From positions 124,001 through 188,000 of the forward strand of contig JALMLS010000255.1 of NCBI GenBank assembly GCA_038496445.1: a stretch of 64,000 nt of DNA, given 5' to 3'. Positions 35,850 through 41,475 of this stretch are shown one piece after another; the stretch's first letter is position 1, and every line of letters starts with the position of its first letter. Under the pieces are notes generated by a model. It was given only the letters and a program-made list of their open reading frames with translations. It made no database searches and was not told the DNA's origin. The DNA is from Trichosphaerium sp. ATCC 40318 (taxonomy: Eukaryota > Protista > Tubulinea). The translations under genes and the position numbers were made by a program.

Positions 35850-36742
35850 TTAGTAGTAATATATAAGACAATAAGCATCCCCTGGTTCATAGTAGTCCTT
35901 ACTGAAGTGGTCTATGGTAAATCCAACGCCTTCCCTTTTGTTAACATTGAGAAGTACACAGTGCACTGTGTTTTAAAATGGCTTACCTTTGTACAAAGCC
36001 ATAGCTCCTTTATTATCAACTGCGACATGTAAAGTAGCTCTCCATATTCCAAAAGCTCTTAAATAATCCAAAACATGTTCCAACATAACTCTACCGATGC
36101 CCTAAAGGAAAATACATGTAAAACTTTCGCTTCAATGTGTCACATCTCACACTTTGAAAAAAAAAAAGGATTACCTTGCGCCTGTGAGAAGGACTAACTG
36201 CAACATTAGTAATATCGACTTCGCTTCCCTCCCCTTCCATGCTATAAATGACATGGCCAACCACTGTCCCATCCTAAAAAATGACACTAAATATTAAATA
36301 TCACGTGCTATAAAAACCAAAAAGCACGTGCCTGTAGAACAGCAACTATAGCCCCACCCTCGTTCATAGCTGAAACAAAACGTTCAGGAGTACTCCAAAA
36401 CTCCATCGAAGACACATCGTAAGCAGCAAAAGCTGTCTAAATGAGAAAACTTGAGCACAATTTGTTGAAACTGTTAACAGATGAGAAACTTACGTTAGTG
36501 AGGGAAATAATAGTTTTTAAGTCCGTTTCGCTATGAGGTGAACGAATGGTTATCTGCAAGGTGTTTTGCGCTAAATTCTTCTCTACTGGGCAATATACGT
36601 GTCCGTTATACATTAGGGCTGGTCTTGGGCGTATTGGCGTCAGTGGGCGTTTATTTGGTTGTTGCTCGGGTATAGTGTCGTCAGACAGTATCAAATCGCC
36701 CATATACTCAGATAAATCATCAATATCATCGTTTCTGGCCAT
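35850..36742 (-). CDS. RimI-like GNAT acetyltransferase with acidic N-terminal extension
   Basis: 'DGTVVGHVIY..EVDITNVAVSPSHRRKGIGRVML', 'LHVAVDNKGAMALYK..GF..RTMN..DAY'. Confidence 0.82.
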
Positions 36743-36842
36743 CTAAACGTTTTTGATTAAAGCGTTCACAGAAATTGAATACAGACTGTTTTTAAACAAT
36801 GATAGCGTTGTATGCTTTGTTTAAACGCGTTGCAGACATACC

Positions 36843-39800
36843 ATGTTAAGGTTGGTTGAGGTAGAACTTAAAGGGAGGCATTATCTTAACCGGGAAGACG
36901 CCTTTTTTAGTATTTCCACCCAGTCCGCTGCACGTTAACACAGTCTACCAGGTCTATTGGTTACTGTTATTTATGGCTGCACGTAACGATCTAACTCAGT
37001 AATCATCTTTTTTTGTACTTATTCAAAAAATTAAACATTGTTTACGTAGGCAGTTACCTCTCCTTATTGCTACATTAGCGGAGCGCCTAAAGAAACCACA
37101 ATTTGGTGCGTATGATTAATATTCTATGTTTTATGTTTTTTTACCTATTAAACCGAATTCTAACTGATCACGTGATTGTAGTTAAAGCGCCAGGTCTATT
37201 TATACGTGGTAATGGTGATAAAAAGTCTGCTAGAAGAATTAAAGATAAACTACTAAAAGGTATTATAATAAATGGACACGTGATATTTATCACGCGATGG
37301 AAGATACTTCTATAAACAGATTTTTTATTTTCTTTTGGTTTTTTGAGATTTATAACGTCATATCGTAGGTAAAACAGAAAAACTAAACAAATGTACAGGT
37401 AAAAGATACTTTCTCGCTTTTTTGTTTTTTCTGATGTTTTCTTTCAGACCCGTACACAATGGGGCTTGTGCTTCGTATGGCCCTAGAAGACATGATAAAG
37501 CCTGTTATTTCGCATGATTTATACGATTGCTTCATGGCTGCACAAGGTGAGAAGAAGACAAAGCTCCGCCGTTTTTTATGGTCACAACTCATCTGTTTGT
37601 ATGTTTTTAGGCGTTCCAGGTTTAGAGGCTCGTAAGGAGAGTGTGAGAAGAGCGCTAGATATGCTTGCTCCTCTGGATGCGCTTGTTTGGGAATACTTGT
37701 GCTCGTTATTTTATGTAGTTCATCAACACTGCGTCGTTAACAAGATGGACGCGTTTACAATATCCAAGGTTTTTTCTCAATACATTTTGAGAGCTCCAAA
37801 GGCCATAAACGGAAGGAAATCAAAGCCAAAAACAAAGGTATTGTTTCTGAAGCAGAAGAACAACTAAAATATTACAGGAGCAAATGGAAGTGGAATTGAT
37901 GAAAAGAGAGCAAGCTATTACAGTATGAACAACCACGAAAAGAAAAAAAAAATCACATGTGATTTTAATGAAGCGCTAATCTTGTCTTTGTTAGGATATG
38001 ATTATCCACTACCCATTCTTTTTTGTACGTACAGAATTTTACTGAGTTTTTTGCTAAAATTGACAACATACACGTGATGGAGTCAGTTGTTTCTAAATTG
38101 TATCATTTTTGTTCTAATTTTTAACACAGGAGAATAAAGAAATAAGATCTCTTTCAAAACGGAAATGCATTGATCAAATGGCTAGTGGTATGCTTAACAA
38201 TATTATTTATTATTTGCGTAGTATTTTATCTTATTTATATTAGCTGCTTTGGATGCAACAGCAAGGATAGTTATAGACAACGGAAGTGCATTTGTAAAGG
38301 TGACACAAACCATTTTTCTTCTTCTCGTTTTTTTCTCTTCCGTTTGGCTGACGCTATTGTTTAAAGATTGGGGTCAGTGGTGATGATCACCCTATGTGTC
38401 TTATACCTAGTCTTGTTGCACTAAAAAAAGGAAAGAAGAAAGGCATTGTACAGTGTGTTGGTGACGCAGTATATAAAAACGACATAACAACATCTCAACT
38501 TAAATATGTTCTCTCTCCGGAACAAGATAAATTTAACTATGATCACGTGCAAGCAATATGGGACCTAGGCATGAAAAATATAAAAGCAGAGGATATGGAA
38601 AGCCGTGGTGTTCTCCTTACAGAACTACCTGATATGTCAAGAGCACGTGGTACTTATTTTTTTCTGAAACCTGACAAGTACTTTCAAGGTTTCTTCTGTC
38701 AAGATGATGGAGATTTGGTTCGAGGAGTATGGCGTTCCATACATGTACGTATACCTTAACACAATATTTACTGATTATTATTCAAGGTATATAGCGCAGT
38801 CTGCCCTCATGACTCTTTATGGTTTAGGTCGTATTAATGGATTGGTGCGTTTTTTGTTCCAAGTGTTTATACATATGGCTTATATGTTTGAGTAGGTTGT
38901 AGATTGTGGAAATAGACTGCAAGTGATGCCTGTACGCTTGTATTATAAATTATAACTTAGTCTAATTCAAACAGGTGATAAGGGGATACGTAAACCACAA
39001 TGCATCGGTAGGCAACATCCTTTCGCAGAAAACAAGAAAATTTATTTTTAATTAGGTGTATCAACGAAATGGTATTCATCAATTGACGCCCTACTTTAAG
39101 CAATTACTTACATTAAAGGTAAATAATGTGTTAGGTGATTTTATTTTAGTATTGATCAAAGGTAGGGTGTCCATTATGGAGAAACAGTTGGCGAATTGGA
39201 AAAAGTTAGAAAATTGAAAGGTAAGAAAATAAAAAACCGATAACCTTTTGCTAAGTTTTTACTTTGCAGAGGAGTTATGTAGAGTTTCGCCAAAACCTTT
39301 ATCCTCAAAACCTAAACTTGAACATATTAAACATGTGACATCCGATGGAAAGACGATTGAACTTGAAGAAGACCGATATCAAGTTGGAGAAGTACTAATC
39401 TTTTTTTACAATTTCTTTAGTACTAACATTTTCTCTTTAGGCGTTGTTTGATGTACGCTTCACTAATCCTTTTGTCAAACTAATTTTACGGTGAATAGCC
39501 ATCACTATTAGGAGTAGACGTTCCAGGTGTCCACAAACAGATTTATGACGTTGTGAAAAAGTCTCCAATCGATGAAAGAAGAATGTTATTATCCAATATT
39601 GTTCTCAGTGGAGGTACGCTTAATTGGTTTTTACTTGCCTTCAACCACTTCATTGCTTTTATTGAATATCTTATTTGAAATGGTTGATGTGTTGTTTAGG
39701 TAGTACAATGTTTCCTGGATTCGGAGAGCGGTTGAAAGAAGAGTTGTGGTCTTTAATAAAAAAAGATAGAACATCAACACTTCAACTCAGAGATATTAAA

Positions 39801-40069
39801 TTTGCTAAAACAGGAGACCAAGGAAATCTCGGCTGGTATGGTGGATCAGTATTTTCAGAGTTAGATACGTTCGAGGATGTGTGCACGTGGCAATCAGGTA
39901 ATACAGTTTTCTTCAAAATGTGTCAAGAGTTTTTTTTAAAATTTTTTCTTTCTGAACACACAAGCCTTATTATGAAAATCTATTGATTGTTAACGTTTTA
40001 TTTAAAACTATAGATTATGAAGAAGTAGGAGCAGATAATTTAGTATCATATTTGTACAAGCCAGAATAA
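36843..40069 (+). CDS. RhoGAP-domain / divergent actin fusion protein (start approximate)
   Basis: RhoGAP 'LPLLIATLAERL..PGLFIRGNG..DPYTMGLVLRMALEDMIKPVI..NKMDAFTISKVFSQYILR' splices in frame to actin 'IVIDNGSAFVKIGVSGDDHP', 'LLTELP', 'VVDCG', 'NIVLSGGSTMFPGFGERLKEEL', 'WYGGSVF', 'DYEEVG'. Confidence 0.85.
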
Positions 40070-40202
40070 ATAAAACAAAAAACAAAAAATAATTTTGAGA
40101 AAAAACAAAGAAAGCACAAAACCTGTTGTGACTTTGTTGGTTTTAAGTAAATATGATTAACACTCTACTATGTTTTAGAAGGAGTTGTTTATTTGGTTAC
40201 CG

Positions 40203-40952
40203 TCATTTACAATACAACTTAGCAATTGTTTCACTTGCAGGAAGAATAATCGTACTAAACTTACAAATCTCTTTAGCTTCAGCATATCTTCGTTGTGATT
40301 TGAAGAGTATAGCTTGAAACACAAGGTTTGTTGCACCTTGTCCAGGTATATTTTGAGCTACTTCAGCTTTATTTATAAGTGTTTGTCCTCGTTGTATTTG
40401 TGACGTGTGGTACTTGAGCATTAATCCAAAAAAGAAATTCACAAAAGGATTTTTACCATCAGTCAAAGAAATAGCTTTCTCATAGAAAGGCAAAGCCTCA
40501 TCATACTTCTGAGCAATGTTCGACAAATACGCCCCATACTCATACTGAGGCCATACGGTATCTTCTAGTTTCAAAGCTGCTTGAAAAGCAGCTGTAGCTA
40601 TCGATGAATCAAAGAGAAGTGGTGTTGAATACAACCAACCCTTGAACAGTTGTGTATTGGCGTATGAGTTGTTAAGACTGAGTGAGGTGTCTAATGCTGT
40701 GCGAGCAAGTACCCAATCTAGCCCATAGAATATATTATACTTTGCCCTTAGTGACCATAGCAAATAGCTGTTTGGATACTTCTCAATCGAAGCATCTATG
40801 ACAGCGTTCGAAGCTTGAAAAGCTTTCTCGGTTCCATCAATTTGAAGTTTGTTTGCAAGTTCGAAGCATTCTTGTTCAGAGGCGCACTCATTTTGAGCGT
40901 AAACGATAAGATACAATGTTAGAAATGAAGATATTAATGCTTGTAGATACAT
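40203..40952 (-). CDS. Intronless secreted TPR-repeat protein
   Basis: 249-aa ORF with signal peptide. TPR-like segments 'YEYGAYLSNIAQKYDEALPFYEKAISL' and 'ARTALDTSLSLNNSYA'. Confidence 0.75.
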   Translation of the reverse strand: MYLQALISSFLTLYLIVYAQNECASEQECFELANKLQIDGTEKAFQASNAVIDASIEKYPNSYLLWSLRAKYNIFYGLDWVLARTALDTSLSLNNSYANTQLFKGWLYSTPLLFDSSIATAAFQAALKLEDTVWPQYEYGAYLSNIAQKYDEALPFYEKAISLTDGKNPFVNFFFGLMLKYHTSQIQRGQTLINKAEVAQNIPGQGATNLVFQAILFKSQRRYAEAKEICKFSTIILPASETIAKLYCK

Positions 40953-41475
40953 TGCGATAGATGAGTGCTTTAGGAAGTATGGGTTAAGTTTTTATGTTTG
41001 AACCTAAATTTATAGGTATTGTTTGCCCGTTGGTAGTGCTTCACACGTGATATTTTGCGATAAGTTATGAATTCGTAGCTAGTCTACGAATTCAGTTTGT
41101 TTTGTACTTCACTGATACACTAGTTTTGCAATGAAATAAAAGAATAATATGGAGCTACCTGACTTCTCTGTATCTTTCACATTATAAAAACCATTTGCTA
41201 CTAACTTTGTGCTGTGTGCTTGATAAGGTCAACAAATTAACATACAAAACTATGGCATCTTTTGCCAGCCGCGTCCTTACAAATGTTACTATTGTTGGCG
41301 AAAATAAAATAAAGAGCTATCTCTAAGCGGATTTGGGATTTGTTAACTCAAGTTCAAATGTTGATACTGTCGACTGTTATCCAACGCTTTGTAAGCACTG
41401 TGTCCGGGTAGTGGATGCAGACCAACAGTTGACTAAATATAATGATTCCACTGTTTCTTAAAGCGCGTGACATCA

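Follow-up and report, generated by a model that had tools for sequence, protein, structure and literature searches.

Actin assembly is controlled by Rho-family GTPases, and actin that has assembled is believed to act back on these GTPases via GTPase-activating proteins (GAPs) that are recruited. Usually, distinct proteins that carry conventional F-actin-binding domains provide the link from actin to the GTPase. The metazoan ARHGAP20 is a multidomain GAP with PH and RA domains and without actin, and filactin (Fia of Dictyostelium discoideum, also reported in Physarum) extends an actin domain with Ist1-type and other domains, but is not known to contain a RhoGAP. Plant class III formins combine a RhoGAP-like domain with FH1 and FH2 domains and have been proposed to tie membrane-bound Rho GTPases to actin (PMC2386819). 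Here, we describe a gene from Trichosphaerium sp. ATCC 40318 that lies in a stretch of 64,000 nucleotides (nt) of contig JALMLS010000255.1 (contig positions 124,001 to 188,000; referred to as the window, to which all coordinates below apply). Window positions 36973-40069 on the forward strand are a single protein-coding gene with 22 exons and a product of 594 residues, in which a RhoGAP domain is followed by a linker of ~60 residues and a full-length but divergent actin fold. The product, called RhoGAP-actin below, is very probably a single fusion protein, and among the known kinds of multidomain RhoGAPs and actin-fusion proteins, this pairing of domains is new.

Like the plant class III formins, RhoGAP-actin has a RhoGAP-family domain fused to an actin-related module. 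However, the partner in the formins is FH2 and not an actin fold, and their finger arginine is lost, whereas it is kept here, though displaced by one residue. The comparison with filactin also reveals differences: Pfam recognized only RhoGAP and Actin in the protein at E values of up to 1, with no Ist1-type region, and the actin domain is only ~30-36% identical to conventional actins, with a degenerate phosphate loop 2 and DNase I-binding loop (D-loop). With human POTE-actin and with ubiquitin-actin, the protein has in common the N-terminal fusion to an actin domain, an arrangement that is recurrent in evolution, but the ankyrin repeats and ubiquitin found there are unrelated partners and not GTPase regulators. 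POTE members were among the structural matches of the actin half, and its nearest sequence relatives include two Ubiquitin+Actin proteins (P0006 and P0030) from metatranscriptomes of the Joint Genome Institute (JGI) and others.

The gene model was built by hand from splice signals and the reading frame and was then checked against RNA. Its open reading frame (ORF) of 594 codons stays intact over 21 introns with lengths of 40-116 nt. When cluster representatives were searched with exon 11, we obtained a protein of 594 residues (P0001) together with the JGI transcript contig on which it had been predicted (L001; 1892 nt, sample 3300016894). This contig lacks introns, and each of the 22 exons is represented in its alignment to the window, among them exons 7, 8, and 9 that link the two halves. 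P0001 is identical to the spliced model residue for residue. In the complementary DNA (cDNA) represented by L001, an in-frame stop precedes the ATG at 36973, and there is only one long ORF. The contig also settled the start of the gene, which an earlier note on this DNA had placed at 36843. As no splicing takes place in the transcript between 36918 and 36998, a frame beginning with the ATG at 36843 would meet a stop codon at 36936-36938, and the true start is at 36973. Our own initial model, with an exon 1 at 36843-36922 and 612 amino acids, was ruled out by the same contig, in which exon 1 ends at 36998. The gene end given in that note, 40069, was right, as the stop codon occupies the last three positions.

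Four public RNA runs (X1-X4) were compared with window positions 36000-41000. X1 (Logan) contains a spliced RNA contig of 1805 nt that runs from the RhoGAP exons through to the actin exons, and the pieces listed for it include RhoGAP exons 3, 5, and 6 as well as actin exons 11, 18, 20, and 21. Four consecutive GT-AG junctions had been claimed to lead from the RhoGAP into the actin part (37837/37878, 37922/37995, 38024/38130, and 38187/38244). All four were found and keep the frame, as does a fifth junction downstream (38299/38367). The first, fourth, and fifth of these junctions were seen directly in X1 together with eleven more, and the second and third were settled by the coordinates of the X1 record, in which 186 nt separate the pieces of exon 6 and exon 11. 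After boundary shifts, this gap corresponds exactly to 45 + 30 + 58 + 56 nt, the lengths of exons 7-10, and every other distance between pieces also agrees with the model. Many of the X1 junctions are supported by contigs of X2 and X4. The source of X2 and X3 is slightly diverged, and these runs support junctions on both sides. In the X2 contig over the 38187/38244 junction, exon 9 is represented by 52 nt or more, and the contig thus reaches at least ~43 nt upstream of an internal ATG at 38178 (Met214). There are no stops in the frame of the linker, compared to five and four stops in the other two frames. The claim that a RhoGAP is joined to a full-length divergent actin is therefore borne out by L001 and X1, which span both halves in one frame of 594 codons. 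The two contigs were produced by different assemblers, while the underlying sequencing data may be common to both. The RhoGAP-actin gene is expressed.

The RNA sources also revealed how the gene varies. L001 differs from the window at six positions of the coding sequence, and all six differences are synonymous, including one in linker exon 9 (38156). Its untranslated regions (UTRs) carry substitutions as well as indels, and introns also vary among the sources. With X2/X3, there were 12 exonic differences from the window, 11 of them synonymous, and two of these sites were common to L001. The pooled variable sites, which are drawn from at least two diverged sources (strains or relatives), amount to 16 distinct exonic sites distributed over the GAP, linker, and actin parts. 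As 15 of them are synonymous, the RhoGAP-actin gene is under purifying selection. Taken together with the open frame of the linker, the synonymous variation points to a translated and selected fusion and argues against a pseudogene and against chance read-through.

The RhoGAP half was recognized by Pfam (PF00620) at residues 12-159 with 58.4 bits (E 1e-15; cut-off 24.5), covering profile positions 1-147 of 148, and exon 6 alone scored 27.7 bits against this profile. Among solved structures, ARHGAP20 is closest (3msx_B, E 2.6e-10), and the two have in common the finger region and the KS.R.(I/L)K(D/E)KL stretch that follows it. Exon 3 encodes the finger motif GLFIRGNG. It had been noted before that this motif reads GLFIR rather than GLFR, and in the HMMER alignment, GLF-I-R indeed pairs with ARHGAP20's GIF-R, with one residue, the Ile before the Arg, treated as inserted, which places the Arg opposite the finger Arg. 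A second difference from ARHGAP20 is a Thr at the position of the conserved Asn of the NLA motif, where NKMDAFTISKVF aligns with NQMTAFNLAVCV of ARHGAP20 and with NKMDSSNLAVIF of ARHGAP11A. We take this Asn to correspond to Asn194 of p50RhoGAP. The residue at the Lys position, read from the exon 5 sequence, is a conservative Arg. Judged by these motifs, the chances that the RhoGAP half would be catalytically active are evenly balanced.

The actin half was covered by Pfam Actin (PF00022) at residues 221-584 with 216.5 bits, which exceeds the gathering threshold (E 6e-64; profile positions 3-403 of 410). The top 60 sequence matches in the PDB were all conventional actins, with E values from 1e-53 to 1e-50, and Plasmodium actin-2 was ~36% identical as counted from the alignment. 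Foldseek gave 29-33% identity to whole actin matches, and its best matches were actins with template modeling (TM) scores by hit of 0.76-0.78. In an AlphaFold prediction, for which the input alignment consisted of actin relatives only, residues 222-590 form an actin fold with a predicted local distance difference test (pLDDT) score of ~70-93, except for subdomain 2 (residues 250-289). There was no actin-related protein (ARP) among the top 60 PDB matches or among the top 30 Swiss-Prot structural matches, all of which were actins or actin fusions. By the tests run, the sequence of the actin half fits no ARP class (Arp1-Arp11).

Conserved and degenerate elements are combined in this actin half. 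The earlier note had listed both phosphate loops and the adenosine motif, and the DNGS-type phosphate loop 1 (IDNGSAFVK, with one Gly to Ala change) and the LSGG.TM.PG adenosine motif (LSGGSTMFPG) are indeed kept as in conventional actin. Phosphate loop 2, however, is degenerate, with DCGNRL-Q instead of DSGDGVTH, which means Asp to Asn and Gly to Arg changes, one deletion, and a His to Gln change. The catalytic Gln of the I-Q-A motif aligns with a Ser. As had been recognized from the sequence, the D-loop is replaced by a lysine-rich segment that reads KKGKKKG. It is ~5 residues shorter, causes gaps in the alignment with actin, and has a pLDDT below 50 in the model. Compared with conventional actin, seven residues are also inserted near residues 530-540, ahead of the last strand-helix unit. 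The residues that match Y143, G146, R147, G168, and Y169 of actin (numbered with the actin-like locus L002, see below, as a proxy) are kept. Several residues of the cleft between subdomains 1 and 3 persist, namely the Tyr, Gly, and Arg of L-Y-x-x-G-R, the G-Y of the W-loop, and the L-x-T-F near the C-terminus, and there is a hydrophobic plug-like LLGV.

We searched for other proteins that combine RhoGAP and actin. With exon 11, 1.84 billion cluster representatives yielded P0001 itself and three low-complexity false matches. The full protein was compared with 5.8 billion proteins in a word-indexed search that uses exact 5-residue words and that distant fusions could escape; no second RhoGAP+Actin protein was found, and 28 actin-only relatives with 28-31% identity were detected. 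The same type of search with residues 1-215 returned P0001 only. Of two scans of JGI metagenome contigs, one was empty and the other gave five actin-like loci (L002-L006) with flanks that show no RhoGAP similarity. Look-ups in the ESM Atlas led to generic actin and MreB clusters only. The best sequence match (P0005) was considered as an orthologue. It is a stand-alone actin-like protein of 358 amino acids with an upstream in-frame stop and 33% identity, and hence not a clear orthologue. No RhoGAP-actin fusion protein was found in the literature searched either. In agreement with the earlier statement that no characterized RhoGAP-actin is known, neither a described nor a database precedent emerged from these literature and sequence searches. 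As an aside, the actin-like ORFs of L003 and L006 contain in-frame stops at conserved positions, which is compatible with an origin from organisms with reassigned stop codons, ciliates being an example.

What could such a protein do? The earlier note had proposed that Rho/Rac signaling is physically linked to an actin-like module for nucleotide sensing or filament-end binding, with a GAP that may be inactive. For either half, the sequence points in both directions. We favor the following explanation with slightly better than even confidence, a grading that reflects the mechanism and not the fusion. With changes in phosphate loop 2, in the D-loop, and at the positions aligned with the catalytic Gln and His, the actin fold would have lost normal ATP-driven self-assembly and would no longer be an ordinary ATP-hydrolyzing, self-polymerizing actin. 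It could act as a targeting module for filaments, filament ends, or actin-monomer-binding proteins via its better-kept subdomain 1/3 face, where the retained cleft residues leave room for binding to filament ends or to cleft-binding proteins. We see an even chance that the actin fold targets the protein to the actin cytoskeleton. As the N-terminus of actin is located on the outer surface of the filament, the N-terminal RhoGAP would stay exposed on the filament outside, and as filactin and POTE-actin tolerate N-terminal extensions on their actin domains, the RhoGAP could be displayed from the partner of the actin fold. At sites of assembled actin, it could inactivate Rho/Rac-GTP or at the minimum bind it, so that a negative feedback from F-actin onto the GTPase would be built into the protein. 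More specifically, the protein might be a GAP-bearing actin-like subunit whose docking on filament ends or sides, or on monomer-binding proteins, puts the RhoGAP beside membrane Rho/Rac-GTP; this version is tentative and rather doubtful.

If this version is true, a negative feedback that is elsewhere achieved by separate F-actin-binding GAPs would be hard-wired in one polypeptide, and the protein would represent a new class of actin-fold proteins that serve as a targeting device for a signaling enzyme. Evolution has joined a GAP domain to the actin fold itself and has maintained the product by purifying selection. If the actin half still recognizes filaments, their ends, or actin-binding proteins, this would be a natural minimal experiment that couples the state of the cytoskeleton to GTPase inactivation, and also a ready-made design for synthetic actin-targeted regulators. 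The gene is in addition a cDNA-supported entry in the short list of natural actin fusions, which includes filactin, POTE-actin, and ubiquitin-actin. For now, the value is limited, as this is a single protein from one lineage about which little is known, and we infer its function.

Several observations weigh against this view, and some of them are shared with rival explanations. Support for the fusion is at the RNA level only, and the two full-length contigs are short-read assemblies that probably trace back to one data set or to a re-filing of it. X4 may be X1 data re-filed, as the two have the same size and the same variants. In X4, the assembly is interrupted between exons 7 and 9, and X2 has two low-depth unspliced contigs with small indels over intron 7 (37903-37997), which could be due to intron retention or to DNA carry-over from a diverged strain. 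Because of this break and these unspliced pieces, GAP-only isoforms, or actin-only isoforms that start at Met214, are possible beside the fusion. The same two observations would also fit a pair of neighboring genes, namely a small gene for the RhoGAP and an actin-like one that begins with the ATG at 38178, merged by assemblers or by rare read-through, and so would the position of Met214 at a normal actin start and the very compact genome, with only ~175 bp to the upstream and ~80 bp to the downstream neighbor. We nevertheless regard two genes as very unlikely. The spliced message has no stop after the RhoGAP, and a GAP-only product requires intron retention; as read from the sequence, a retained intron 6 leads to a stop after 10 codons and a retained intron 7 to a stop after one codon. 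Moreover, splicing of exons 7, 8, and 9 yields an in-frame stretch with no stop codon, in contrast to the 4-5 stops in the other frames, two assemblers produced the same continuous contig, the X2 contig extends upstream of the ATG at 38178, and the sole variant in the linker is synonymous. It also counts against our explanation that an orthologue in another lineage was not found in the protein and metagenome searches. A protein that is a singleton in all searches run could be a young lineage-specific chimera that is transcribed and functionless. However, the nearly complete restriction of exonic variation to synonymous sites over both halves, while UTRs and introns vary, and a frame that is intact across all introns make this extremely improbable.

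Other points concern the individual halves. The insertion at the finger and the Asn to Thr change may abolish GAP activity, as judged from the sequence, and p85 is an example in which GAP activity is lost though the Arg is kept. AlphaFold predicted the RhoGAP half and the linker to be helical with low confidence (pLDDT mostly below 50), since GAP homologues were absent from the input alignment. The fusion could thus be real and its RhoGAP a pseudo-GAP that only binds active Rho/Rac, in which case the protein would act as an effector and deliver an actin-like seed or cap to places on the membrane where the GTPase is active. A precedent is the inactive RhoGAP-like domain found in class III formins, which is fused to an actin-assembly module (PMC2386819), and by analogy we consider an effector with an inactive domain a serious alternative, albeit on balance an unlikely one. 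The retained Arg, which HMMER aligned with the ARHGAP20 finger, and the conservative Arg at the Lys position speak against it, and ARAP2-like pseudo-GAPs lack the finger Arg (PMC2386819). With respect to the actin half, identity per subdomain had been considered as support for end binding and was dropped, since subdomains 1 and 3 are better kept than subdomains 2 and 4 in ordinary divergent actins as well. It would also be conceivable that the actin half is still functional and co-polymerizes with conventional actin, so that filaments would be decorated lengthwise with GAP domains, as has been proposed for filactin. The full-length fold with its conserved phosphate loop 1, adenosine motif, and plug-like LLGV would agree with that, as would the finding that conventional actins and not ARPs are the best matches. 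Nevertheless, the low identity, the degenerate phosphate loop 2, the changes at the aligned catalytic Gln and His, and the short, basic D-loop with its low model confidence render a working actin clearly unlikely, and the actin domain of filactin is, in contrast, described as extremely homologous to conventional actin (PMC2441452).

The fusion between RhoGAP and actin also retains a possible trace of its origin. Met214 is 14 residues ahead of the DNGS Asp and thus at most four residues from the usual start of stand-alone actins. As this internal Met sits where stand-alone actins begin, the sequence suggests that a RhoGAP gene captured an adjacent downstream actin-like gene, either by losing its stop or by splicing onward. 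Exons 7-9 would have been recruited from the former intergenic spacer or 5' UTR, and the former actin start codon would persist as the internal Met214. The retained start codon would illustrate one way in which compact genomes can give rise to fusions of this kind.

Table 1. Positions of the RhoGAP-actin gene parts and of the neighboring genes in the window.
Feature	Position	Strand	Evidence or remark
5' UTR, minimum extent	36918..36972	+	contiguous with exon 1; L001 bases 1-57 align
Exon 1, start codon, MAARNDLTQ	36973..36998	+	donor GTAATC, 51-nt intron; P0001/L001
Exons 2-6, RhoGAP domain and basic tail GRKSKPKTK	37050..37837	+	Pfam; X1/X2/X4 junctions; ARHGAP20 alignment
Exons 2-6, individually	37050-37105, 37182-37259, 37369-37398, 37448-37546, 37611-37837	+	
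Linker exons 7-9	37878-37922, 37995-38024, 38130-38187	+	residues ~173-216; L001 alignment, X1 arithmetic and junctions
Internal ATG, Met214	38178	+	within linker exon 9
Exons 10-22, actin fold	38244..40069	+	Pfam Actin; RNA junctions; PDB matches
Exons 10-15, individually	38244-38299, 38367-38642, 38689-38744, 38787-38844, 38896-38931, 38975-39007	+	
Exons 16-22, individually	39056-39118, 39166-39220, 39270-39391, 39441-39452, 39499-39613, 39700-39897, 40014-40069	+	
Lysine-rich D-loop replacement KKGKKKG	38412..38432	+	gaps versus actin; pLDDT < 50
Intron 11, GC-AG	38643..38688	+	donor GCACGT inside CACGTG hexamer; junction 38642>38689 GC..AG in X1, X3, X4
Exon 19, 12-nt microexon, encodes ALFD	39441..39452	+	RNA contigs X1, X2, X4; model closes frame
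Stop codon TAA	40067-40069	+	
3' UTR, minimum extent	40070..40122	+	L001 bases 1785-1892 align to 40012-40122
Divergent neighbor gene	36331-36780	-	ATG 36742; spliced contig in X4; ~175 bp from RhoGAP-actin transcript 5' end
Convergent TPR-like ORF	40203-40952	-	ends ~80 bp from RhoGAP-actin transcript 3' end

The positions of all parts of the gene and of its neighbors are listed in Table 1. Two details of the gene structure, the GC-AG intron 11 and the 12-nt microexon, had gone unmentioned in the earlier note. Intron 11 begins with GC, and there is no GT donor in the right phase. The microexon is documented in X1, X2, and X4 by 11 letters, CGTTGTTTGAT, between the junction sides 39392 and 39499. 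The donor sites of the gene frequently read GTACG or GTGCG.

The region is AT-rich (~36% GC) and intron-dense, and the gene spacing around RhoGAP-actin is very tight. Scans of the whole window for Rfam families and tRNAs gave no matches, and the domains found in its long ORFs were only weakly informative. The palindrome CACGTG occurs 72 times in the window, compared to 9.8 +/- 2.6 copies expected from dinucleotide-preserving shuffles. Within the gene, it is found at 37169, 37277, 38071, 38544, 38644, and 39884, and the GC donor of intron 11 is provided by one of these copies. Several copies in introns have the form (A/T)CACGTGAT.

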